A stretch of DNA of 64,000 bases from Mantamonas sphyraenae STR306. Taxonomy: Eukaryota > Protista > CRuMs. Location: contig JAPMXV010000070.1 of the NCBI GenBank assembly GCA_026936335.1, positions 1-64,000 on the forward strand. The letters are read 5' to 3'. Below, piece after piece: positions 1-49,111 of the stretch. Below the pieces are notes generated by a model. It did not search any database. It had not been told where the DNA came from and worked only from the letters and a program-made list of their open reading frames with translations. Both the position numbers and the translations under genes were made by a program. Numbering within the stretch: the stretch's first letter is position 1; each line of letters opens with the position of its first letter.

Positions 1-166
1 CTAACCCTAACCCTAACCCTAACCCTAACCCTAACCCTAACCCTAACCCTAACCCTAACCCTAACCCTAACCCTAACCCTAACCCTAACCCTAACCCTAA
101 CCCTAACCCTAACCCTAACCCTAACCCTAACCCTAACCCTAACCCTAACCCTAATTCTAACCCCAA
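1..166. repeat. Telomere, (CCCTAA)n = TTAGGG type, left chromosome end
   Basis: CTAA plus 25 perfect CCCTAA units to 154, then degenerate TTCTAA and CCCCAA before unique sequence. Confidence 0.99.
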
Positions 167-435
167 ATGGGATGATGTTCTGTTATATATGATGAGTCCG
201 GTCTATGTTGTGTGAGTTGTGCTTGTGTCTGGTGGCGGGGTGGCTGAGTTGTGTGGTGACATGGGGCGGTGGGCAATGGGTGGGAGTGAAAATGTTGCTG
301 GTGAGTTGCCGTCGTCCTGCAACGCCACGCAGTCAGCACTGCCCTTCCGCCTTCAACCAAATTATCACCAACACCCACAACTCCCTCCACCTGTCCAACA
401 CAATCCACATACACTCCAGCACCACCACCACCATC

Positions 436-3400
436 ATGGACAAAGACTACTCAAGCACTCCGAAGCAACAACACACATCCAACACCTACCCAGCGTGCGT
501 TCTGCATTTCACTCCGTTTTCAGACTGCCCGCTTCTCCCGCTTCAATGCCTCCTCCATGCCTCCGTCGCTTCCCTGCACTCCTCCCCTGCATCTCCACTT
601 TCCCATCACCACCGCTGCTGCCTTCTCCGCTGTTCTCCGATCCCCTCTCCCCTGTCACTCCCCTCTCCGTTGCCAGTTTCCCGGTCTGCCAATCTCCTCC
701 CGTTTTCCCTCTTTGCTCGTTCCAGCCTCCCTTCACCCCCGCTTCTGCCCTGACGGCGTCAATTCCGTCTTCCGCTCACCGTTTCCACCCCGCCCGTCCC
801 CTTCCCCGTCTCCCCACAGCTACGCGTACATGGTCGCTCCCATGGCTGCCCAGCCATTTCCGAACATGCTGCCCGTCTCTGGCGTACAAAACCCGTACCA
901 GCACCCACAACCACCCATCATCTGGGTGCCTGTCAACACCTACCCGCAGCAAAACCACGCATATGCTCATCAGGGCCATCCATACTACGCCTACCCTCCT
1001 CCGCCGCCTCCGCAGCCGCGACAAACTGCCCAGGTGCACTTCGCTCAGCCTCCGTCGCACCCTCCGCCTGCTCAACCCACCACAAACCACAACCGCGTCC
1101 CCAAACGCGTCAGCCCTGCCTTTGTCGGCATCACACAGACCACATCCACCACCACATCGTCGTTCTCCTCCCTCCAGACCACACGGCAGACTGGAGACAG
1201 CGACGACAACGACGCAGACCAGGACATGCACACACATGACACCGGCGACGTGGAGGACCTGATGTTCCTGAACTTTGGCCACCTTGAACCACGGTCGCCC
1301 TCCAGCAACTCAGAGTGGATAACCGCCTCATGGATAGAGGCGTACGAAGAAGACGATTTGGCAAACGACGCAACCCAGCAGCCCGTGGTCGACGAGTTGG
1401 AAACTGGGGGTTCATTCAGCTTCGCAGACACTGGCGATGCCATGGATGAGGAGTACATGCCGCAAGACGACAGCGACGACGAAACAGACGACATAGAGCA
1501 GGAGGACACGGACGATTGGCAGCCGAGACGCACACGTAGAGGCCATAGACGACGCAGAGGCAACGCCAGCCGACGTACTGGTCCACAAACGATGAAAGGC
1601 AGCGGACAGCGCAGGCGAAAAGTCACGGCTGGAAGTGGCACAGAGACAGGAACATCGAGCACACGGGCAAGGAGGGCCAGGAACGGAGACACCGACGCAC
1701 GGAAGAAAGCAGGCGTGGACAAGACGAACAAGTTGCCAGATGGTGTTGTGCGCAAAGGGTGGACAGCGGGAATCAGCGACGAGCGCAGCCGCAGCAACAA
1801 GAAGGAGCACGTGGCACTCCTGAACCACATGCACACCCTGGCCAACGAGCATCCCATCGACAACATCCTCGACCTCATGTCCCTGCAGGCGCGCGTTGTG
1901 GTCTGCCATGGCACCTTGACCATGCTGGTCCGACAGATCCTGCTCGCTCTGTACAACATTCCCCTCTCCCAGGGCGACATGGCCTTCTGTCTCATCCTTC
2001 TGGGCCATGACGTGGATCAACAGGCGTGCAGTGATGCCATCAAGAACGCTGGTCTGGCCATGGGTGTGACAAAGGCTGGGTTGAAGGTGTGCTGGCTGGA
2101 GGAGCCACACGACCACGGCGACCCCAACTACGCCCTCCTCCACCTACTCATGACAGAGATGGACACTCTCGGCGACAGAACCCATGCCACCACCTGGAAG
2201 GAGCACAAGCAGACCCAACTGTGGCTGCAGGGAGCACGACGCCCTGCTGACAACGACAGCGACCCACACTGGACACAATGCGATTACGACCACCACCTCA
2301 CCACCACCAAGGTGGAACAGTGGGAACCAGAGTCTATGCGCAATGGTTGGGCAGCACATAGAACAACCGACGAGCGTGGCAGCTGCACGGCGCGGGAGTT
2401 CCAGACGCTCATGGCACACATGAAGGCACGCGCAGCCAAGCACCCTCGCCATCAGCACACACACGAGCACCAGGCACTGCGTGAGCTGATCAACAACGGC
2501 AACCTGATGTCTCTGGTGCGACACATCATCCTGGCGCTGGGCAACGTTGGCGTGCCGCCTGTCGACCTGGCCTTCTTTGTCCGCCTCCTCAGGCCACAAC
2601 TTACCTACAAGAAGGTTCAACAGGCCATCAGCCTCAACCTCACCCGCGGTGTCACCTCCCTCTCCCTCAAGATCGCCTGGCTCGACAACCCCAAACCCAG
2701 CGACGCCACACTGCACACCCTCCTCCACACCCTCATCGACCGCATCACACCGCACATCACCACCAGACCCACCACCACCGACGCCGTCAACGCCATCGAT
2801 ATCACCGAGCTCGTTCTGCCCGAGCCCACAGAGGAGGAGAAGATGGCCGTGGAGGATGGACTGCCAGATGGCGTTGTGCGCAGTGGCTGGACGTCCTGGC
2901 GCAAGAGCGAGCGCACCCACAGCAACAAGAAGGAGCACGTGGCACTCCTGAACCACATGCACACCCTGGCCAATGAGCATCCCATCGACGACATCCCAGA
3001 TCTCATGACCCTGCAGGCGCGTGTTGTGGTCTGCCATGGCACCCTGAACACGCTTGTCCGACAGATTCAGCTCGCTCTGGGCAACATTTCCCTCTCCCAG
3101 GGAGACATGGCATTCTGCCTCACCCTTCTCGGCCGAGACATGGATCGACATGCGTGCATCGTTGCCATCACCAAGGCTGGTCTGGCCATGGGTGTGACAA
3201 AGGCCGGGTTGAAGGTATGCTGGCTGGAGGAGCCACACGACCACGGCGACCCCAACTACGCTCTCCTCAACCTGCTCATGACCGAGATGGACACTTTCGG
3301 CGACAGACCCCATCCCACCACCTGGAAGGAGCACAAACAGACCCAGCTGTGGCTGCAGGAAGCACGACGCCCTGCTGACAACGAAAGCGACCCGCACTGG

Positions 3401-4012
3401 ACACAATGCGACTACGACAACCATCTCACCACAACCAAGGTGGACAAGTGGCACCCTGAGTCAGTGCGCAATAGCTGGAGCACACACCTGCACAACGACG
3501 AACGAGGCAGCTGCACGGCACGGGAGTTCCAGACGCTGCTGGCACACATGAAGGCACGCGCAGCCAAGCACCCTCGCCATCAGCACGCACACGAGCTCCA
3601 GGAACTGCGTGAGCTGATCAACAACGGCAGCCTGAAGTCCCTGGTCCGACACATCATCCTGGCGTTGGGCAACGTTGGCGTGCCGCCTGTCGACTTGGCC
3701 TTCTTTGTCCGTCTCCTCAGACCACGTCTCACCTACCAGCAGGTTCAAGGTGCCATCAGCGCCACCCTCACCCGCGGCGTCACCTCCCTCTCCCTCAAGA
3801 TCACCTGGCTCGACAAACCCAAACCCAGCGACGCCACACTGCACACCCTCCTCCACACCCTCATCGACTGCATCACACCCCACATCACCACCCGACCCAC
3901 CACCGTCGCACTCGTCAACGCCTACCCCATCCCCTCCTTCACCCTCCCCAAGCGCAAAGACCTTTCCTCCTCCTCCTCCTCCTCCTCCTCCAAACGCCAT
4001 CGCCTCGAATGA
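436..4012 (+). CDS. Subtelomeric repeat-module protein, copy 1 (exons 436-494, 820-4012; ~1083 aa; modules ABAB)
   Basis: ATG in CACCATCATG context. Phase-2 intron 495-819 (GTGCGT...CTGAC...CCCCACAG) joins MDKDYSS...TYPA in frame to YAYMVAPM of the 1151-aa ORF. The same intron is conserved in copy 2. Ends [21 protein letters not shown]. Confidence 0.85.
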
Positions 4013-4046
4013 ACCACCCTTTCATTCTCACACCCTCCTCACTCAT

Positions 4047-4210
4047 TCACCTCCCCATCCACTCCACCACACTCTCCATCACCTCATCCGGGAGTGTCAC
4101 CCACCCTTCCGACCCTCCCTTCTCCACATACGCCTCCATCCCACCACACCCAAACATCGCCTCCCCCTCTTCCCCATTCATCACCAACCCCGTCTCTTTA
4201 GCCTCGTCCC
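4047..4210 (-). pseudogene. Relic 3' end of an ankyrin-type gene with F-box/SOCS-like tail, paralogous to 17186-18142
   Basis: LVMNGEEGEAMFGCGGMEAYVEKGGSEGWVTLPDEVMESVVEW vs LVMNAEEREVMFECGGMEGYVEERGWEGWVTLPDEVMERVVGW at ~17200-17335; nucleotide similarity is also visible. Confidence 0.8.
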
Positions 4211-4314
4211 CCTGTGCACCCCACCCATCATTCAACCACAGTATCGCCAACACCCACAACACCCTCCACTAGTCCAACACAATCCACATACACTCCAGCA
4301 CCATCACCACCATC

Positions 4315-7300
4315 ATGGACAAGGACCACTTAAGCAATCCGAAGCAACAACACACATCCAACACCTACCCAGCGTGCGTTCTGCCTTCCACTCCGTTTTC
4401 TGGCTGCCCGCTGCTCCCGCTTCCATGCCTCCTCCATGCCTCTGTCGCTCCTGCACTCCTCCCCCGCATCTCCACTTCCCCATCACCACCGCCGCTGCCA
4501 CCTCCGCTCTTCTCCGAACCCCTCTCCCCTGTCACTGCCCTCCCCGTTGCCAGTTTCCCGGTCTGCCAATCTCCTCCGTTTCCCCTCTCTGCTCGTTCCA
4601 GCCTCCCTTCGTCCCGCTTCTGCTCTAACGGCGTCCATGCCGTCTTCCGCTCACCGTTCCTACCCCACCATGCCCCTGCCCGTCTCCCCACAGCTACGCG
4701 TACATGGTCCCTCCCATGGCTGCCCAGCCGTTTCCGAACATGCTGCCCGTTTCTGGCGTACAAAACCCGTACCAGCATCCACAACCACCCATCATCTGGG
4801 TCCCTGTCAACACCTACTCTCAGCAGCACCACGCATATGCTCATCAGGGCCACCCATACTACGCCTACCCTCCTCCGCCGCCTCCTCAGCCGCGACAAAC
4901 CGCCCAGATGCACTTCGCTCAGGCTCCGTTCCACCCTCCGTCCGCTCAACCCGCCACAAACCACAACCGCGTTCCCAAACGTGTCAGTCCTGCCTTTGTC
5001 GATATCACACGGACCACATCCACCACCACATCGTCGTCCTCCTCCCACCAGGCCACACGGCGGACTGGAGACAGCGACGACGACGACGCAGACCAGGACA
5101 CACACACACATGACACCAGCGACGTGGAAGACCTGATGTTCCTGAACTTTGGCCACCGTGAACCACGGTCAACCTCCAGCAACTCAGAGTGGATGACCAG
5201 CTCAGGGATGGAGGCGTACGAAGAAGACGGCGAGGCAAACGACGCAACCCAGCAGCACGTGGACGACGAGGTGGAAACTCAGGGCACACTCAGCTTTGCG
5301 TACACTGATGATGCCATGGATGAGGAGTACATGCCGCAAGGTGACAGCGACGACGACACAGACGACATTGAACAAGAGGACGCGGACGAATGGCAGCCGA
5401 GACGCACAAGAGGAGGCCACACGCGACGATGCAGGTGCCACACCAGCCGACGCACCGGTCCACAAAAGATGAAAGGCAGCGGACAGGGCTGGCGCAGGGT
5501 CACGGCTGGCAGTGGCACAGAGACAGGAACGTCGAGCTCACGGGCAAGGAGGGCCAAGAACGGAGACACCGGCGCACGGAAGAAAGCAGGCGTGAAGTTG
5601 CCAGATGGCGTTGTGCGCAAAGGATGGTCGCGGAACTGGCGCAGTGACGAGCGCAGCCACAGAAACAAGAAGGAACACACGGTACTGCTGAAACACATGC
5701 ACACTCTGGCCAGCGAGTATCCCATAGACAACGTCCCCGACCTCATGACCCTGCAGGCGCGTGTTGTGGTCTGCCATGGCACCCTGTTGACGCTGGTCCG
5801 ACAGATTCAGCTCTCTCTGGGCAACATTCCCCTCTCCCAGGGCGACATGGCCTTCTGCCTCACCCTTCTCGGCCGTGACATGGATCAACGTGTGTGCGGT
5901 GTAACCATCCTCAACGCTGGTCTGGCCACGGGTGTGACAAAGTCTGGGTTGAAGGTGTGTTGGTTGGAGGAGCCACACAACCATGGCGACCCCAACTACG
6001 CCCTCCTCCACCTTCTCATGACAGAGATGGACAGTCTCGGCAGCAGGACCTATCCCACCACCTGGAAGGAGCACAAGGAGACCCAGCTGTGGCTGCAGAA
6101 AGCACGACGCCCTGCTGACAACGACAGCGACCCACACTGGACACAATGCGACTACGACCACCATCTCACCACTACCGAGTTGGACAAGTGGCATCCCGAG
6201 CCTGCGCGAAGTGGCTGGGCATCGCACACTACCAACGACGAACGTGGCAGCTGCACGGCGCGGGAGTTCCAGACCCTGCTGGCACACATGAAGGCACGCG
6301 CAGCCAAGCACCCTCGCCATCAGCACACACACGAGCACCAGGCACTGCGTGAGCTGATCAACAACGGCGACCTGCTCTCCCTGCTGCGACACATCATCCT
6401 GGCGCTGGGCAACGTTGGCATGCCCCCTGTCGACTTGGCCTTCTTTGTCCGCCTCCTGAGGCCACACATCACCTACAAGCAGGTGAAAAGCGCCATCAGT
6501 TCCACCCTCAGCCGCGTTGTCACCTCCCTCTCCCTCAAGATCGCCTGGCTCGACAACCCCAAACCCAGCGACGCCACACTGCACACCCTCCTCCACACCC
6601 TCATCGACCGCATCACACCCCACATCTCCACCCGCCCCACCACCATCGATGCCGTGATCACCCTCGACATCCCCGAGATTATTCTCCCTGAGCCCACAGG
6701 GGAGGAGATGATGGCCGAGGAGGATGGACCGCCAGATGGAGTTGTGCGCAGTGGCTGGACATTCTGGCGCAAGAGCGAGCGCATGCACAGCAACAAGAAG
6801 GAGCACACGGCACTGCTGAACCACATGCACACCCTGGTCAACGAGCATCCCATCGACGACATCTCCGACCACATGAACCTGCAGGCGCGTGTTGTGGTCT
6901 GCCATGGCACCGTGACCACACTCGTCCGACAGATTCAGCTCGCTCTGGGCAACATTCCCCTCTCCCAGGGCGACATGGCCTTCTGCCTCACCCTTCTCGG
7001 CCGTGACATGGATCAACATGCGTGCAGCGTTGCCATTCTCAACGCTGGTCTGGCCATGGGTGTGACAAAGGCTGGGTTGAAGGTGTGCTGGCTGCTGAGG
7101 AGCCACACGACCACGGCGACCCCAACTACGCCCTCCTCCACCTGCTCATGACAGAGATGGACCGTCTCGGCGACAGGCCCCATCCCACCACCTGGAAGCA
7201 GCACGAGCAGACCCAGCTGTCGCTGCAGAAAGCACGACGCCCTGCTGACAACGACAGCGACCCACACTGGACTCAATGCGACTACGACCATCACCTTGCC

Positions 7301-7894
7301 ACCACCACGGTGGAAAAGTGGGAACCAGAGTCTGTGCGCAGTGGCTGGAGCAAGTCCCGGGGTGACGCGACCGACGAGCGTGGCAGCTGCACGGCGCGGG
7401 AGTTCCAGACGCTGCTGGCACACATGAAGGCACGCGCAGCCAAGTACCCACGCCATCAGCATGCACACGAGCACCATGCACTGCATGAGCTGATCCGCAA
7501 CGGCAGCAAGCTGTCCCTGGTGCGACACACCATCCTTGCGCTGGGCAATGTTGGCGTGCCGCCTGTCGACCTGGCCGTCTTTGTACGCCTCCTCAGGCCA
7601 CGCCTCACCTACCAGCAGGTTTCCAACGCCATCAGCAACACCCTCAATCGTGGTGTTACCTCTCTCTCCCTCAAGATCGCCTGGCTCGACAAACCCACCG
7701 ACGCCACACTGCACACCCTCCTCCACACCCTCATCGACCGCATCACACCCCACATCACCACACGCCCTACCACAGTCGCACTGGTCAACGCCTACCCCAT
7801 CCCCTCCTTCACCCTCCCCAAGCGCAAAGACCCTTCCTCTTCCTCCTCCTCCTCCTCCTCCCCCTCTTCCTCCAAACGCCAACGCCTGGAGTAA
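4315..7894 (+). pseudogene. Subtelomeric repeat-module protein, copy 2 (exons 4315-4373, 4694-7894; ABAB) with a 2-nt frameshift at 7095-7096
   Basis: Intron 4374-4693 matches copy 1. The family sequence TGCTGGCTG-GAGGAGCC reads TGCTGGCTG-CT-GAGGAGCC here, splitting the gene into ORFs 4704-7151 and 7022-7894. It could be an intact gene with an assembly error. Confidence 0.75.
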
Positions 7895-8244
7895 CACTCA
7901 CCCCTATCACACGCACCTTTGTCCTCAGTGGCGTGTGCGAAATTCCACTCACCCTCACCTGCCCAACCAACGTTTCCAACAACAACTTCTCACCATTCAC
8001 AGCAACACCAGTTCCCCCTTCCGCTCATACCATCCCTACCCCGTGTAAGTAACCTCCCATGTTTCGCATCTCCGGTTCCGTCAACCGTCCTTTGCACACA
8101 CTTGTCGCTCCATCCGCCTTCAAAGGTCCCTCTTTGCGCCCAACCGTCCACGCTATGCTGACCATCCTCCAACCTTCACGCACATGCATCATTACACGCC
8201 CACCCCAACCTATCACCTATCGTGTTCCACTCAGTTTCGGTCCA

Positions 8245-10065
8245 ATGAACCTGCAACGAGGCTACATTCCTCAGCAATATCTTTCCCCACCCGGCTACGC
8301 ATATCCACAGAACTCCATGCAGTCCTTTGTGTGGGTTCCTGTTCTGTTACACTATCCGAACCGCCTTCACACATCCAACACCACTCCTCCCCCGCCGCCT
8401 CCGCCTGCTGCGCCCAGCAACGTATCTAGCCATTCCTCCGAACACGAGCCTGGAACGCTTTATGTGGACACCACACAACCCGCAAGGCGCTTCTACCGCT
8501 TCCACGACACCGATTGGATGACTCAGGATGACGTGCTCCGGTATGTCGAGGCGAGCGACGAGGCCTGGGCTCAGCCCGTCTCGCAAGACCACACAGCCAC
8601 GACCACAACCTCAACAACCACCATAGATGGGGATTCCGTACCTGGGGACAATAGCGATGACGACACAGACGACATGGAGCAGGAGAACATGGATGAACAG
8701 TCGCTGCCCAAACGAATCAGTCGCCGCACACGACAGAGGGGCCGCAGCGGATGTCGCTCTGGGACACAAAGCAGCACATGGAATGGAAAGCACGGGCACA
8801 GGGTCACGGCTGGCAGTGGCACCGAGACAGGAACGTCGAGCACACGGGCAAGGAGGGCCAAGAACGGAAACAACGGTGCAAGGAAGAAACCAGGCGTCAA
8901 CAAGAAGAACAAGTTGCCAGATGGCGTTGTGCGCAAAGGGTGGACATGGGGGTACAGTGACGAGCGCAGCCACAGAAACAAGAAGGAGCACACGGCACTG
9001 CTGAACCACATGCACACCCTGGCCAACGAGCATCCCATCGACAACATCCCCGACCTCATGACCCTGCAGGCGCGTGTTATGGTCTGCCATGGCACTACGA
9101 CCACGCTTGTCCGACAGATTCTGCTCGCTCTGGGCAACATTCCCCTTTCCCAGGGCGACATGGCCCTCTGTCTCACCCTCCTCGGCCGTGCAATGGATCA
9201 ACAGGCGTGCAGCAGTGTCATCCGCGACGCTGGTCTGGCCATTGGTGTGACAAAGGCTGGGTTGAAGGTGTGCTGGCTGGAGGAGCCACACGACCACGGC
9301 GACCCCAACTACGCCCTCCTCCACCTCCTCATGACAGAGATGGACACTCTCGGCAGCAGAGTCCATCCCACCACCTGGAAGGAGCACAAGCAGACCCAGC
9401 TGAGGCTGCAGGAAGCACGACGCCCTGCTGACAACGACAGCGACCCATACTGGACACAATATGACTACGACCACCACCTCAACACCACCGAGGTGGAAAA
9501 GTGGCACCCTGAGACTGTGCGCAGTGGCTGGGCATCGCACTCTCCCAGCGACGAACGTGGCAGCTGCACGGCGCGGGAGTTCCAGACGCTGCTGGCACAC
9601 ATGAAGGCACGCGCAGCCAAGCACCCTCGCCATATCCACACACACGAGCACCATGCACTGCGTGAGCTGATCAACAACGGCAGCCTGCAGTCCCTGCTGC
9701 GACACATCATCCTGGCGCTGGGCAACGTTGGCGTGCCGCCTGTCGACCTGGCCTTCTTTGTCCGCCTCCTCAGGCCACGTCTCACCTACCAACAGGTGCA
9801 AAGTGCCATCGGCCTCATCCTCACCCGCGGCGTCACCTCCCTCTCCCTCAAGATCGCCTGGCTCGACAAACCCCAACCCAGCGACGCCACGCTGCACACC
9901 CTCCTGCACACCCTCATCGACCGCATCACACCCCACATCACCACCCGTCCCACTACCACCGCACTCGTCAACGTCTACCCCATCCCCTCCTTCACCCTCC
10001 CCAAGCGCAAACACCCTTCCTCCTCCTCCTCCTCCTCCTCCTCCAAACGCCAACGCCTTGAATGA
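8245..10065 (+). CDS. Subtelomeric repeat-module protein, copy 3 (single AB unit, diverged N-terminus; ~606 aa from first ATG)
   Basis: Part of ORF 8059-10065. Upstream phase-2 intron 8045-8234 (GTAAGT...GCTGAC...ACTCAG) lies at the position equivalent to copies 1 and 2. Shares WVPV, W(M/I)T, DDxDDxEQE, VTAGSGTETGTSS and the KRQRLE tail. Confidence 0.8.
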   Translation: MNLQRGYIPQQYLSPPGYAYPQNSMQSFVWVPVLLHYPNRLHTSNTTPPPPPPPAAPSNVSSHSSEHEPGTLYVDTTQPARRFYRFHDTDWMTQDDVLRYVEASDEAWAQPVSQDHTATTTTSTTTIDGDSVPGDNSDDDTDDMEQENMDEQSLPKRISRRTRQRGRSGCRSGTQSSTWNGKHGHRVTAGSGTETGTSSTRARRAKNGNNGARKKPGVNKKNKLPDGVVRKGWTWGYSDERSHRNKKEHTALLNHMHTLANEHPIDNIPDLMTLQARVMVCHGTTTTLVRQILLALGNIPLSQGDMALCLTLLGRAMDQQACSSVIRDAGLAIGVTKAGLKVCWLEEPHDHGDPNYALLHLLMTEMDTLGSRVHPTTWKEHKQTQLRLQEARRPADNDSDPYWTQYDYDHHLNTTEVEKWHPETVRSGWASHSPSDERGSCTAREFQTLLAHMKARAAKHPRHIHTHEHHALRELINNGSLQSLLRHIILALGNVGVPPVDLAFFVRLLRPRLTYQQVQSAIGLILTRGVTSLSLKIAWLDKPQPSDATLHTLLHTLIDRITPHITTRPTTTALVNVYPIPSFTLPKRKHPSSSSSSSSSKRQRLE

Positions 10066-10310
10066 AGTCCATTGCCGCTTACTATCCAAACTCTCCTCCC
10101 AAGCGTTTTTGAATGCTCCTCCGTCAGACAGTGCCGACAAGGTCCACTTGCAGCATTCTCCACTCTGTTCAAGACGCTCTCAAATGCAATCAACCTTGTT
10201 GTCGTCGTTGTTGTTGTTTGTTGTTGTTGGTTGTGTGGGGAGGAGTCTCAACCTCCCCGGGTTCGTCCTTTGCGATTCATTCTCAATCCCTGTACACTCT
10301 CTCTTCAGCC

Positions 10311-11834
10311 TCATCCACGCAGTGACTGGATCACTGCCTGCAGATCTCCCTCACATGCTTCCAGTGCGTCCACACATGCCTTTCGATCCGTCAGACCCAC
10401 CAGCGCAAGTGTCGCCAGCTCGCTCTCCCACTCCTTCTCAGAGTCCATCTCAGACTCAGATTCGCTCTCAGACGAAGAAGAGCTGCTGCTTCCGCTGCTC
10501 TCATCCTCCTCCTCCTCATCCTCCTCATCCTCCTCATCCTCCACCTCTTCCTCCACTGCCACAATCTGGCATCGGAATCGTTGTCCAAACTTCTTCCCTT
10601 CCCCATCTGCCATCCTCCAGAACCCGCTGTAGCTTCCAGCTGCCTCAGGTGCTTCCATCTCCACACTCACGTCCACCTCCTCTCCTGCCTCAGCCACCAC
10701 ATCCACAGGCACAGCCTCGCTTGCTCCCATTGCGTCTCCGTTCTTCTTGCTCACAAACACCACCTGCGCTCCCGCAGGCCATGCTTCTTCGCTCTCGTTC
10801 CGCAGACGCCACGTCTTTGTAAACTTGTGTCCACACTGCACCCGAGCATCCGTCCCATAGCTCACATGGCTCACAAACCGAGCCTTGTGTCGACTCTGTC
10901 CTCGTTCCCCATGTCGTCCACCGTGATGATGTCCGTGATGATGTCCGTGATGGCGATGCAGATGGCAACCTCGATGACCACCACGATGACCACCACGATG
11001 ACCACCGCGATGACCACCACCACGGCGTCCATGGCCATGACATTCATGCTGCTCCTCCTCCTGTTCCTGTTCCTGCTCCTGCTGCTTCGCTTCATACGTC
11101 AGCAGTTCTCCAGCCTCCAACTTGTCCATCCGAGCCATGGCAATCTTGTCCAGCACATGTCCAGGCACTTTGCGTCGTGGCATGTGTCGAAGCACACGCT
11201 CCACATCCACAGCTTCCAGCTTTCCCAGCCGTTCCTGCACGCTCTCTGAAAGGTCTCCTGCTCCAACCACAGCCGCTTCCTCCTCCACTTCCTCCTCCAC
11301 TTCCTTTCCCATCTTCTTGCTCTTCACACCGCCCTTCTTTGTGCGTGTCTTGCTCGTCGTCTTCTGCTTCTTTGTGGTCTTGCCACTCTTCTTGCTGCTG
11401 CTGCTGCTTGGCATCATCGACTCCTCGGCTGCCTTGGCTGCTCGTCGTGCTGCAACTCGTGTCATCAGTTTCACCCGCAGAACCCCAGGCTCACGCCCGC
11501 TCTGCTTGCTCTGCATCACACACAGTTCCACCGCGTGTCCCAGCTCCTTCTCGCTGCTCACACGCACCCAGTCTCCGTCTTCGTCTGCGTACGACATCAC
11601 CATTCGGCTCATCCTCTCCTCCTTCTTCCCAAACACTTCTGCAATCTGCTGCACCAGTCCATCCAGTCCTCCTTCCTCGCACAGCCTCTCGCTCCACACC
11701 CCGAAGCGCCGTGTCTCCGCTCCCACAGTTGCCTTTACAGACACCATGGTCTTCACGTCGCTGTTGCTGCTGCTGCTGCTGTTCTTTGTCATCGTCGTCT
11801 CGTTGGTGTTGTTTCCACTCTTGCTCATCGTCAT
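10311..11834 (-). CDS. NBR1-like selective autophagy receptor (PB1 - His/Gly-rich - FW - UBA)
   Basis: PB1 (VKATVGAETRRF...SYADEDGDWVRVSSEKEL), FW/NBR1 domain (ARFVSHV...FTKTWRLRN...WP...GSYSGFWRM...FGQRF), C-terminal UBA (LALVGLTDRKACVDALEACEGDLQAVI). Confidence 0.88.
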   Translation of the reverse strand: MTMSKSGNNTNETTMTKNSSSSSNSDVKTMVSVKATVGAETRRFGVWSERLCEEGGLDGLVQQIAEVFGKKEERMSRMVMSYADEDGDWVRVSSEKELGHAVELCVMQSKQSGREPGVLRVKLMTRVAARRAAKAAEESMMPSSSSSKKSGKTTKKQKTTSKTRTKKGGVKSKKMGKEVEEEVEEEAAVVGAGDLSESVQERLGKLEAVDVERVLRHMPRRKVPGHVLDKIAMARMDKLEAGELLTYEAKQQEQEQEQEEEQHECHGHGRRGGGHRGGHRGGHRGGHRGCHLHRHHGHHHGHHHGGRHGERGQSRHKARFVSHVSYGTDARVQCGHKFTKTWRLRNESEEAWPAGAQVVFVSKKNGDAMGASEAVPVDVVAEAGEEVDVSVEMEAPEAAGSYSGFWRMADGEGKKFGQRFRCQIVAVEEEVEDEEDEEDEEEEDESSGSSSSSSSESESESEMDSEKEWESELATLALVGLTDRKACVDALEACEGDLQAVIQSLRG

Positions 11835-12445
11835 CGAGTTGCTTTTTTGGTTGTTTTTGGGTTTGCTTGATTTCGTTTCGTTTGCTTGCTTTCGCTATCA
11901 CTTGTTTCTCACTTTCACTTGCGCTGCTGTCTGTATTCGCAGTCGTTGTGTTGTATCGTTACTCGTCCTCTTGGGTTATCCGAGTGTGTGTTTTTGTGAT
12001 GATAAGTTGGGTGAGTGTGCGTGAGTGCGCCTTTTGAACCCCACTTGCCCTGTGTTCCGAGTTCCGAGTTCTGCACCCGACCACCGTTCCGAGTTTCCCC
12101 ACCACTCTTCCGCGAAAATACCACACATCAGCCACCCACCAACACACGCATTCCCACCCGTTTCCCCATCGCACCACTGATCTGTCCACCACGTGCACCA
12201 CCAAAATTGCAAGCAAGCACACATGCCGCGCTGGAACCACATCACGCCCCCGATCTTGGGGAGGCACACCACCACCACCCTTTGCATCACAATGCTTGCT
12301 TGCTCTCTTGCTCTGACCTGCTCTTCACATGCAAAAGCCAAACTCCGAGTCTCCGTTCCTGGTGTTGGTCGCGGAGCTGGTTCATTACATCTGGAGATGT
12401 TGACTGTATTCTGCAAACTCGACCTCCATAGACAAGATCCGATTG

Positions 12446-12517
12446 GCCTCGGTAGCTTAGGGGTAGAGCATTGCACTCGTAATGCAAAGGTCATGGGTTC
12501 AATTCCCATCCGAGGCT
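12446..12517 (+). tRNA. tRNA-Thr(CGT)
   Basis: Acceptor GCCTCGG/CCGAGGC, anticodon arm TTGCA-CTCGTAA-TGCAA, T arm ATGGG-TTCAATT-CCCAT; 72 nt, no intron. Confidence 0.96.
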
Positions 12518-12520
12518 TAA

Positions 12521-46076: not shown

Positions 46077-49000
46077 ATGTCCACCACCACCGGACTGCCT
46101 TCGGTGCGCAAGGTCTCGTCGGTCAACATGGCCTTTATCTACCGCAAAGGGTACGTGGGGTCTCTCTGCCCGCACACTGTCCGCCTCCGTCTCCCGGTTT
46201 TCCTTCCGCTGACGCCGACGTTGCCCCCCACAGCCAAGCCGACACACTGCGCACCCCGAAACGCAACCCGCTGGTCAACAAACGCAACTACGCGTGGACC
46301 AAGTCCGAAGCATACGGCGACGTGCAGGTAAGCAATGCGTCCGGTCTTATCCGCCCCTCTCTGCGTTCTGGGGGGGCCCTCGGAAGAACGCCAGAAGTTG
46401 CCCGGTGGGATGGGGAAGCTTGTCCGAACTTTTTTTGCCCAAACCGCAACCCCCGACTCACGGCGCGGGTCGGCCGACCATGCCATCCACACAGAGAGAA
46501 CTGGAAGACTATTGGGAGTCCCAGGTGCACGACAAGTCGCTGCAGGAACTCGGTAGCCGCAATCTCAAGAAGCTGATCCGCAGCAAATCCGTCCCGGAAG
46601 CTTGGCGCAGGCGCATCTGGCTCCACGTCACAGGTGCTGTCCACCTCCTCGAGGAAAACCCTCATATGTACACCGATGCCATTGCGGCCACCTTTGGAGA
46701 CACGTACGTCACCATGCGCCCGCAAAAGGGCCCCTTTCCCCACACCGCAAATCCCTCTCGTTCGTCGCGCGTGGACTGTGTTTTTCGCCAACCCACCCCT
46801 GACGCAATCCTCACGCATCGTCCGCAACACGAACACACACACACACACACATCTCCACAGTGTCCCTCGACAGGTCATCAACGTCCCAGACTTTGGCTGC
46901 AAGGCCGATCTGGGCGCAAGTCTGCCGGCCAACATGACGGTCCACCGTTCGCCGTCGCTCGTCTCCTTGGCCAGCATGCGCTCCAACAGCATGCTCGGCG
47001 ACGTAGACCTGGACAAGGTGCTCAACAAGGCCGAAGCTGCCGCCCAATCTTCCTCCACCAAGACGACAGCCCACGCTTTGCGCAGCGAGGACCGCAGCGT
47101 CATGTCTCCGGCGTCCGGATTCTCCAAGTTTAAGCAATCGCGCAGCAATATGAACAGCATTGTGGACGAAAGTGACCTGGACGGCGTCGACGATGCGCAT
47201 GACAACAGCAGCAGCAGTGCTGGACAGGCCCAGAAAGTGGGCAACATCACAATCAAACCCCTGGACGACCAGGGCCAACACCTGCTCCCGACGGGCACAG
47301 AGGGTGAGGAGGACGAAGAAGACGCGTCCACCCTCGTCACCGATGAGGACGCTGCACACACCCACGAGGACCACCAGGACATCGACACAGACACAGACAC
47401 GGTGGCCACAGACGCAGAATACCATGATTCAGAGTCCAACGTGCCCGAGGCCGAGGTTTCTGACAGCTGGGTTGTCGTCGACGCCAGAGATATCATCATG
47501 CACACGCGTTCCCAACAGGGCGACGACGCAGAGGACACAGACACGGACACGTCAGCGTCGGTAGGAAGCGGCGGCGGCAGGCCTTCCATCGATCGTCCGC
47601 GCCTTGGCGACATCCCCACCATGGTGCGCCGGTCGTCCATCGACCTCACAGGCATCAACAGGCGGCGCATGAGCATGGAGGGCAAGCGGCCCGCAGGCGG
47701 CGGCGGCACCCTCACCAGCAGCAGCAGCAGCAACAGCCTGGCCTCCTTCGGACGCAATGACAGCGCACAGCTTGCGCGTGAGCGCTCCATCTCCGTCATG
47801 GAGTATTTTGAGAAGGAGGATGTGCTCCACCAGCAGGACCAGCCCTTCCTCTTCCTCTCCAGCAAGGGCATTGCCGCTGCACACAGACTGCTCGTTGTGT
47901 TTGCCCACGAAAACACAGAGGTCTCCTACTGTCCTGTGTTGCCCTACCTTGTCGGCTTCCTCCTCATCTACCTCGACGAGCCCGAGGTGTATGCCGTCCT
48001 GGACTGCCTGTACAAGGGCAAGCCCCTCAGTGGTGAGGACCAATGCCCGTACCTGCACACCACCGAGCAGGAGACAGCCGTGTTTGTGGAAACCTTTGTC
48101 GACCTGGTCAAGCTGCGCGTGTCGCGCGTGTACAAGCACGTCCACAACGACGAATCGGACATTCACCTGGACGAGTTTGCCGTCGAGTGGTTCACCCGGT
48201 TCTTCCTAGGCTCCATGCCGTTTGAGTGTGTCATGCACATCATGGACTGCTACCTCAACGAGGGCACCAAGATCCTCTACCGCATCTCCCTTGCCCTCCT
48301 CAAGGAATTCAAGAACGACCTTCTCGCTTGCAACGACTACCACAGCTTCCGTGTCACCCTCACTGAACTGTGCCACGACATGACCATCGAGCGCCTGCAA
48401 GACGTCCTCAAAACTGCCTTTGGCATCTATTTGTCTCGTGCACACGTCGACAAGCGCGACAAGAAGAACTGGGGCAACATTGCCGAAATCACTGCGCGGC
48501 TGGACACCCTGACCACAGTCGGCCATTCGGGCAACGGCGTCTACCGCAGACCACACCTCGACTGCAAGAGCAAGGTGTTTGACGAATACCTGCAGTTTGA
48601 GATGCTGTGGACGTGGCTGCCTGCAAAGATGGCCATCCGCGACGGGCGCAGGCTGTTCTGCACATCCGAGGATGGATACAGTCTGACGATGCTGTTTGAA
48701 AAGTGCAAGGGCAGTGGTGCGAACCTGCTTCTGGTGCGTACCATGGACCACCACGTGTTTGGCGCCTATACCAACATGTGCTGGCAGCTCTACAACCAAT
48801 TCAAGTACTACGGCAACGGAGAATGCTTCATTTTCACCATGGCGCAGCCACACCCGGACAACCGCCACCGCATGTTGTACACGCCCAAGAAGTACGAATG
48901 GTGTGGCGACAACCAGGATCGCTGCTTCATGATGAGCACCCGCGACTCGCTCATGATCGGCGGCAGTCGTACAGCCATTTACCTGGACAAGAATCTGGAG

Positions 49001-49111
49001 AACGGCAGCACGTACCAGTGTGCCACCTTCAACTCGCCCAAGTTGGTGTCGACAAAGAGCTCTGACTTTGTGGTCAAGAATATCGAGGTGTGGGGGTTTG
49101 CCAGTTCGTGA
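46077..49111 (+). CDS. TBC + TLDc protein, TBC1D24/Skywalker-like (introns 46151-46233, 46328-46494, 46704-46860)
   Basis: LKKLIRSKSVPEAWRRRIW; LSSKGIAAAHRLL...SYCPVLPYLVGFLL; IMDCYLNEGTKILYRISLALL; TLDc LFCTSEDGYSL...VFGAY...YYGNGECFIF...CATFNSPKL...IEVWGF. Confidence 0.88.

Follow-up and report, generated by a model that had tools for sequence, protein, structure and literature searches.

In TALE, PPR and C2H2 proteins, short tandem repeats of 28-35 amino acids carry one to three specificity residues each. In KRAB and PRDM9 zinc-finger arrays, a near-constant repeat scaffold is under positive selection at a few helix positions that contact the ligand, and recombination shuffles the repeats into unique arrays. 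The WD40, ANK and TPR repeats of fungal NLR proteins (HNWD/STAND) are likewise near-identical units with a few selected positions on the binding face, are exchanged between paralogues and have an inferred role in recognition, while the Med2-like TLO proteins of Candida albicans are paralogous nuclear regulators encoded at most chromosome ends, which share a Med2 domain and lack hypervariable patches. Here we describe a family of modular proteins found at the start of a 64,000-nucleotide stretch of the Mantamonas sphyraenae STR306 genome (contig JAPMXV010000070.1, positions 1 to 64,000 of the forward strand; hereafter the window), where three adjacent genes encode modules of two types, A and B, in the orders A-B-A-B, A-B-A-B and A-B.

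We propose, as the probable explanation, that these genes belong to a lineage-restricted subtelomeric family in which three patches under selection likely form a ligand-contact surface that confers specificity, the ligand most likely being nucleic acid. The evidence that carries this proposal is the confinement of variation to homologous patches in both module types, the excess of amino acid change at these patches over synonymous change, and the extensive exchange of sequence among copies located at chromosome ends.

Variation is concentrated in three patches shared by both module types

We placed the A and B modules with hidden Markov models (HMMs) built from the window's own modules. The ten modules of about 190 amino acids were recovered at the positions given in the original prediction, which had been made from the letters of the window alone, gene 2 being frameshifted (Table 1). 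Cross-matches between the two HMMs scored 50-67 bits over about 135 residues, with an identity of 31-37%, and A and B are evidently, as judged from these alignments, ancient paralogues of one domain. We then assembled a set of modules from the window and 29 other loci, 28 of them at contig ends, comprising 52 A modules (49 of them unique) and 53 B modules; these roughly 105 modules are the best matches to one query, of perhaps 800 in the whole genome.

Shannon entropy, calculated over the 49 unique A and the 53 B modules, was near zero at most columns and peaked in A at columns 12, 15, 63-64, 98, 101-102 and 105-106, and in B at columns 10-17, 62-64, 98, 101-102 and 106. These peaks coincide with the three hypervariable sites (HV1, HV2 and HV3) that had been singled out in the window, namely past an invariant Trp, before the motif LVR or LLR, and at two residue pairs around Ala-Ile, to which one extra variable column four residues upstream of these pairs has to be added. 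HV1 of the A modules needs a correction, as only one or two of its positions are truly hypervariable and the remainder is a fixed difference between A modules in first position (T-x-G-x-S-D) and those in second position (T-x-W-R-K-S). Patch codons make up 7.5-10% of the sites and account for 24-37% of the pairwise differences. No two modules had been seen to share a combination of patches, and this extends to the larger set, in which all 49 A and all 53 B combinations are distinct.

The proposed homology of the hypervariable sites between the two types was also recovered, with 9 of the 12 most variable columns coinciding in a joint alignment (hypergeometric p = 4e-10). In either module type, conserved hydrophobic columns (96, 100, 104 and 107-110) are interleaved with the variable columns 98, 101/102 and 105/106 in the rhythm of a helix, and HV3 would therefore lie on the exposed face of a helix. 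Outside the patches the frameworks, described earlier as almost invariant, are indeed strongly conserved but do vary beyond the window: their non-synonymous diversity (piN) is 0.06-0.07, and the exact motif GVTK.GLKVCWL is present in 33 of 52 A modules and the exact long motif of B in 21 of 53 B modules.

The patches evolve under diversifying selection

To guard against circularity, the patches were taken as defined on the window and measured only on modules from the other loci (46 A and 48 B). Patch piN was 0.41 in A and 0.46 in B, compared with 0.07 and 0.06 elsewhere in the modules, and the background synonymous diversity (piS) was 0.17 in A and 0.14 in B. The ratio of patch piN to background piS reached 2.39 in A (interval 1.69-3.13) and 3.23 in B (2.48-4.09). 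When the piS of the three flanking codons on either side was used instead, the ratio was 2.5 in A (1.5-4.9) and 2.0 in B (1.4-3.2), and none of 10,000 random column sets attained the piN of the patches. The framework showed the opposite regime, with a piN/piS of 0.41-0.43 that indicates purifying selection. Neither a local mutation hotspot nor templated hypermutation accounts for this pattern, because flank piS is not raised in A (0.16, compared with 0.17 far away) and rises only modestly in B (0.20, compared with 0.135).

A parsimony count on a nucleotide tree agreed with these tree-free results. At the main columns, non-synonymous changes were 2-6 times more frequent than the global synonymous rate (Poisson p from about 1e-3 to 1e-22), most strongly at columns 12, 63, 64, 98, 102, 105 and 106 of A and columns 11, 15-17, 63, 64, 102 and 106 of B. 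The diversifying selection that had been suspected at the three patches is thus borne out on modules independent of the window by the ratio to background, by the ratio to the flanks and by parsimony, and it acts at defined sites, as in subtelomeric variant families.

Family members adjoin nearly every telomere

The side of position 1 of the window is a true chromosome end. The array had been called subtelomeric, and the term applies literally because the (CTAACC)27 tract at 1-163 is a true telomere. The genome assembly (25.06 Mb in 78 contigs) is telomere-to-telomere-like: among the matches listed, telomere repeats stand at both ends of contigs C1 and C2 and at the start of C3, and 1,212 forward and 1,108 reverse telomere-repeat matches were found across the genome.

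Compared with the genome, the AB unit of gene 3 gave at least 107 scored matches among 406 candidates, with identities of 81-92%, and the N-terminal region of gene 1 gave at least 131 among 211 candidates, only one of these 131 matches containing an in-frame stop. Among the matches listed, family copies lie on more than 50 left contig ends, on the plus strand, and on more than 50 right ends, on the minus strand. Plus-strand matches are found within about 12 kb of the contig start and minus-strand matches near the contig end, with one exception on contig C29. The first family gene is usually 0.8-0.9 kb from the contig end, and there are typically one to three genes per end. The family is near-universal at subtelomeres and reads away from the telomere, its copies adjoining telomeres on many chromosomes as those of subtelomeric variant families do.

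The cluster on C29, at about 79.8-97.7 kb, is the sole clearly internal one among the matches listed. Its copies are convergent and have open frames of 2,172 and 3,224 amino acids, which imply many AB units; a mis-join, an old rearrangement or giant members might account for it. In the window, the subtelomeric array spans no more than about 10 kb. The mean length of the 78 contigs is about 320 kb, the genome-wide telomere counts fit many more repeat-bearing ends, and very small chromosomes are unusually many for a genome of 25 Mb.

Copies exchange sequence between chromosome ends

The four-gamete test gave a minimum of at least 42 recombination events in A (591-nt alignment) and at least 23 in B (453-nt alignment), and pairwise identical runs were longer than in column-permuted data. 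Identical HV3 patches were found on differing backgrounds, including A modules of first and second position. Another locus (contig C22, about 223.7 kb, locus L002) has an A module whose DNA is the same as that of gene 3's A module, and the B modules that adjoin these two agree for 51 codons and then diverge, suggesting that two chromosomes exchanged sequence recently. Apart from such cases the pairwise distances form a star-like pattern, most pairs being 40-80 nucleotides apart. Judged from these alignments, recombination among the copies is extensive, and the copies are mosaics of the kind that ectopic recombination or gene conversion produces in subtelomeric variant families.

Searches for relatives

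Pfam returned no match for the four open reading frames (ORFs) of the array or for 68 separate modules, winged-helix families included, even at E-values up to 10, and no homologue was found among PDB sequences with either single sequences or profiles. A word-indexed search of 5.8 billion protein clusters with residues 280-668 of gene 3 found no homologue, a joint A+B profile, run exhaustively against 1.84 billion representatives, gave 0 matches at E<=0.001, a scan of JGI metagenomes produced 45 pattern matches of which none was confirmed, and feature searches of the ESM Atlas with A and with B found no homologue. Nothing on such a family, or on a protist with 78 chromosomes, was found in the literature. 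The view that the modules belong to an undescribed family therefore stands, no profile search having assigned them to a described one. The organism itself seems very poorly sampled in protein databases; among the same 5.8 billion clusters, the best match of a TBC/TLDc protein (skywalker/TBC1D24-like) encoded at 46634-49111 on the plus strand of the window is a EukProt entry with 30% identity. Given this poor sampling, the blank establishes the family as undescribed and does not argue for its absence from close relatives.

Two further candidate identities were considered and rejected. A surface antigen was set aside as inspection alone revealed neither a signal peptide nor a membrane segment in the proteins, and a transposon as there is no enzyme domain and homology between copies ends about at the stop codon.

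Predicted fold of the modules

An AlphaFold2 model of the AB unit, built from paralogues only, has a predicted local distance difference test (pLDDT) score of 46 and shows helices followed by a hairpin at residues 108-121. A model of the B module of gene 3, with A and B modules as the alignment, reached a pLDDT of 63.6 and a predicted template modelling (pTM) score of 0.66, with helices at residues 23-38, 46-58, 61-72, 79-89, 95-107 and 127-144 that have a pLDDT of 70-82. Exhaustive structural comparison with VIA-align gave a best Z of 5.1, and most of the top 50 rows were winged-helix domains aligned over about residues 57-125, among them Rrf2, CRP, GntR, ORC, cullin WHB, SAMD1, histone H1, forkhead, MarR, PadR, Fur and Stn1. 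On the model, HV2 corresponds to the start of the first of three helices and HV3 to residues 96, 99, 100, 103 and 104 of the third. The models thus hint, weakly, that the module may be helical with a winged-helix-like core and that HV3 may occupy the exposed face of the third helix.

Gene models and protein layout

The ORFs first assigned to the genes proved too long at their 5' ends. In one contig of the public run X3, position 8044 is joined exactly to 8235, with GT..AG ends, and the X3 depth is 25 within 8045-8234 compared with 134-157 alongside; the unspliced form of this segment is present in runs X1, X2 and X4. We take the segment for a spliced 5' intron and hence for a sign that gene 3 is transcribed, even though X3 is not registered as an RNA run. 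X3 behaves like RNA although it is recorded as 'DNA?'. Among public runs, none recorded as RNA contains the stretch; the four used are contigs, in which depth over the modules reflects copy number and gives no ranking of expression.

The ATG at 8059 that opens the long ORF of gene 3 is inside the intron, and the ATG at 8245, the likely start, lies 10 nt past the acceptor. In gene 1, GTGAGT at 301 and AG at 818-819, the latter 10 nt before the likely start at 830, reproduce the spacing of gene 3, and a putative 5' intron at 301-819 would give this gene the same layout. Gene 2 carries a 2-nt CT insertion (a duplication) near 7095-7096, within its second A module, as revealed by an alignment with three intact A modules; this frameshift may reflect a pseudogene or an assembly or long-read error. 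At 7095, a base is missing from one contig of run X1.

In a self-comparison of the array with blastn, the homology of gene 3 to genes 1 and 2 starts at 8621, its N-terminal region being different. Homology between copies stops about at the stop codon (for gene 3 at 10066, one base past it), and the 3' flanks differ. The protein of gene 1 comprises, in order, a Pro/Tyr/Gln-rich start, an acidic stretch, an Arg/Lys-rich stretch, the modules, a poly-Ser tract and the end KRHRLE, and that of gene 3 a distinct N-terminal region, a basic stretch, the A-B pair, a poly-Ser tract and the end KRQRLE. B modules have an isoelectric point of 10.4 and a net charge of +7, and A modules 6.2 and -6. The combination of an acidic stretch, basic stretches and a basic tail is the layout of a nuclear regulator, and this composition therefore suggests that the proteins are nuclear regulators.

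Beyond the family, positions 1-38000 of the window show a sustained and strong excess of C over G on the plus strand (GC skew of -0.2 to -0.4), across genes of both orientations.

Table 1. Features of the array and its surroundings in the window
Feature	Positions	Strand	Remarks
Repeat unit 1, upstream region and gene 1	352-3991	+	88.4% DNA identity to unit 2 (4231-7861), self-blastn of 1-12500
Gene 1, likely coding sequence, A-B-A-B	830-4012	+	1,060 amino acids; ORF 557-4012, likely start ATG 830
Module A, gene 1, first position	1733-2323	+	Full-length HMM match
Module B core, gene 1, first position	2324-2791	+	Full-length HMM match; linker to 2860
Module A, gene 1, second position	2861-3451	+	HMM match
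Module B core, gene 1, second position	3452-3919	+	HMM match
Gene 2, A-B-A-B, frameshifted	4704-7894	+	Overlapping ORFs 4704-7151 and 7022-7894
Modules of gene 2	A 5598, B 6192, A 6731-7321, B 7322	+	HMM matches; second A split by insertion
Intron GTAAGT...CAG, 5' region of gene 3	8045-8234	+	190 nt; contig of run X3
Gene 3, likely coding sequence, A-B	8245-10065	+	606 amino acids; ORF 8059-10065, first ATG past intron
Module A, gene 3	8914-9504	+	HV1 8944-8961, HV2 9094-9102, HV3 9202-9228
Module B, gene 3 (the one modelled)	9505-9972	+	HV1 9532-9549, HV2 9682-9690, HV3 9790-9816
Telomere repeat (CTAACC)n, complement of TTAGGG	1-163		Tandem Repeats Finder: period 6, 27.2 copies, 97% matches
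NBR1-like autophagy receptor, PB1 and NBR1 Ig-like domains	10311-11834	-	First ordinary gene past the array
tRNA-Thr(CGU)	12445-12518	+	Beyond the NBR1-like gene

A subtelomeric family of putative recognition proteins

In the explanation that we favour, the family consists of at least 131 genes at essentially every chromosome end, all transcribed away from the telomere, and each protein has a disordered N-terminal part, Pro/Tyr/Gln-rich and acidic, after which come an Arg/Lys-rich stretch, the A-B pairs (one to several) and a C-terminal tail that is basic. Each module would be a conserved hydrophobic scaffold exposing about 8-10 residues in three patches, which would correspond to an arm that follows the invariant Trp, the beginning of a helix and one side of a helix further on. 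Selection is pushing the patches to differ, most likely because they form a ligand-contact surface, and each module may encode a different binding specificity. Diversifying selection on this surface is well supported, and it is from the selection that we infer binding. New variants would arise by point mutation, and ectopic recombination and gene conversion among chromosome ends would both shuffle these variants and homogenise the scaffold, with selection presumably keeping the patches different against that homogenisation.

As for the ligand, DNA would be read by the basic B modules through the HV3 residues of their third ('recognition') helix, with the acidic A modules as partners. By analogy with KRAB or PRDM9 zinc-finger arrays, the proteins may be fast-evolving, sequence-specific nuclear factors, a suggestion that we put at somewhat short of probable. 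A bolder version, which we think rather improbable, is that the modules are a hitherto undescribed class of re-targetable DNA-reading domains with a winged helix-turn-helix-like core, in which the 8-10 or so patch residues would act as a readable recognition code, diversified at 150-odd chromosome ends to keep pace with rapidly changing genomic targets such as transposons; this would amount to an independent invention of the role played by KRAB zinc fingers in vertebrates.

Several observations weigh against the proposal or against its structural part. Acidity, as found in the A modules, would be unusual in a DNA binder. The best VIA-align Z is below 8, under which the program's guidance warns of a mere common arrangement, and Foldseek found nothing significant in PDB, BFVD or the ESM Atlas. 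The B model gives low confidence to the putative wing (residues 108-124), which is drawn as a hairpin in the AB-unit model. In 25 of 53 B modules the most variable HV3 column holds Pro or Gly, as would suit a helix's first turn more than its centre, and this calls for caution with the model. The selection statistics, finally, come from home-made counting methods applied to about 105 of some 800 modules of a heavily recombining family.

Alternative explanations

The same evolution could have taken place with a protein or another non-nucleic-acid ligand, in innate immunity, in self/non-self discrimination or in the recognition of parasites, for example of viral or transposon proteins, and the closest comparison would then be the hypervariable repeats of fungal NLRs. 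We hold this to be unlikely, though deserving of serious weight. Diversifying selection on exposed patches is silent on the type of ligand, the acidity of the A modules and the lack of a significant match to any DNA-binding family are compatible with a protein partner, and winged-helix folds also mediate protein contacts, cullin WHB being among the weak structural matches. Pfam, however, detects no NACHT, TIR, death-fold or other signalling domain in these proteins, and a nuclear binder of nucleic acid agrees better with their acidic stretch, with their basic stretches and with the basicity of the B modules.

A selfish telomere-associated repeat, like yeast Y' or the fungal telomere-linked helicase, in which the ORF would serve its own spread or the maintenance of telomeres, is very unlikely. 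Such an element would account for copies at almost all ends with a constant spacing (about 0.8 kb) and a single orientation, and for the tandem repetition of the whole unit with its upstream region, but Pfam finds no helicase, reverse transcriptase, transposase or nuclease domain, the homology gives out about at the stop codon with differing 3' flanks, and site-specific positive selection on a conserved scaffold is unexpected for a spreading unit.

The weakest explanation, to which we give hardly any credence, dispenses with adaptive specificity and takes the patches for unconstrained loops or products of local or templated mutation, and their contrast with the framework for a by-product of conversion and concerted evolution; recombination is indeed rampant, piS inside the patch codons is raised (0.31 compared with 0.14-0.17) and counting methods can be biased where codons differ at several positions, but patch piN is 2.0-2.5 times the piS of flanking codons that are themselves at most modestly elevated, with intervals that exclude 1, whereas neutrality would allow no value above the synonymous one, hypervariability falls on the same columns in A and B, two types only about 33% identical, conversion tracts would homogenise the patches too unless selection opposed them, and the 10-kb array contains no reverse transcriptase or template repeat.

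Implications

If the proposal of selected ligand-contact patches is true, the family would provide a new protein scaffold for generating many binding specificities and a natural library of several hundred variants on a near-constant framework within a 25-Mb genome, suited to finding the residues that determine specificity. Chromosome ends would then be a nursery for an intracellular, probably nuclear recognition family, as opposed to the surface antigens of parasites of the textbooks. The family offers a way into the question of how a unicellular eukaryote that has been little sampled responds to targets that change quickly, such as transposons or viruses. Even with a mundane ligand, a gene that sits next to almost all telomeres with constant spacing and orientation is a useful marker of subtelomere dynamics.

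Comparison with known systems

The comparison with TALE, PPR and C2H2 proteins drawn in the original prediction holds for the design, a conserved scaffold with variable residues, but membership of these families is excluded: there is no Pfam match, and in place of their short repeats the family has modules of 156-197 amino acids with about 8-10 variable residues in three patches. Winged helix-turn-helix domains would, if the models are right, share with the module an order of three helices and then a hairpin, the most variable patch lying on the exposed face of the third helix; they differ in that the structural match does not exceed a Z of 5.1, in the lack of sequence or profile similarity, and in the extra helices that flank the core of the module.

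With KRAB and PRDM9 arrays the family shares a constant scaffold, a few selected positions, shuffling, unique combinations and a likely nuclear-regulator context. Its fold and size are unrelated, helical modules of about 190 amino acids standing against fingers of 28, with two to four and occasionally more modules per protein, and it has no KRAB or SET domain, no Pfam match and a universally subtelomeric location. The TLO genes of Candida albicans resemble it in their placement at most chromosome ends and in what would be a nuclear regulatory role, but the family has no match to Med2 in Pfam, far more copies (at least 131), modular repeats and hypervariable patches. Fungal NLR repeats have in common with it similar units, selected positions, exchange of repeats and a presumed function in recognition, whereas the family has another fold, no NACHT or NB-ARC domain and a subtelomeric location.

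Finally, the var, VSG and Pneumocystis MSG families share with it telomere-proximal arrays, ectopic recombination, mosaic genes and diversifying selection. These are surface proteins of parasites, while the proteins described here show neither a signal peptide nor a membrane segment by inspection, their layout points to the nucleus, and there is no sign of parasitism in the data. Zinc-finger arrays, fungal NLR repeats and families of subtelomeric antigens already show this design; what is new is the scaffold together with its setting.

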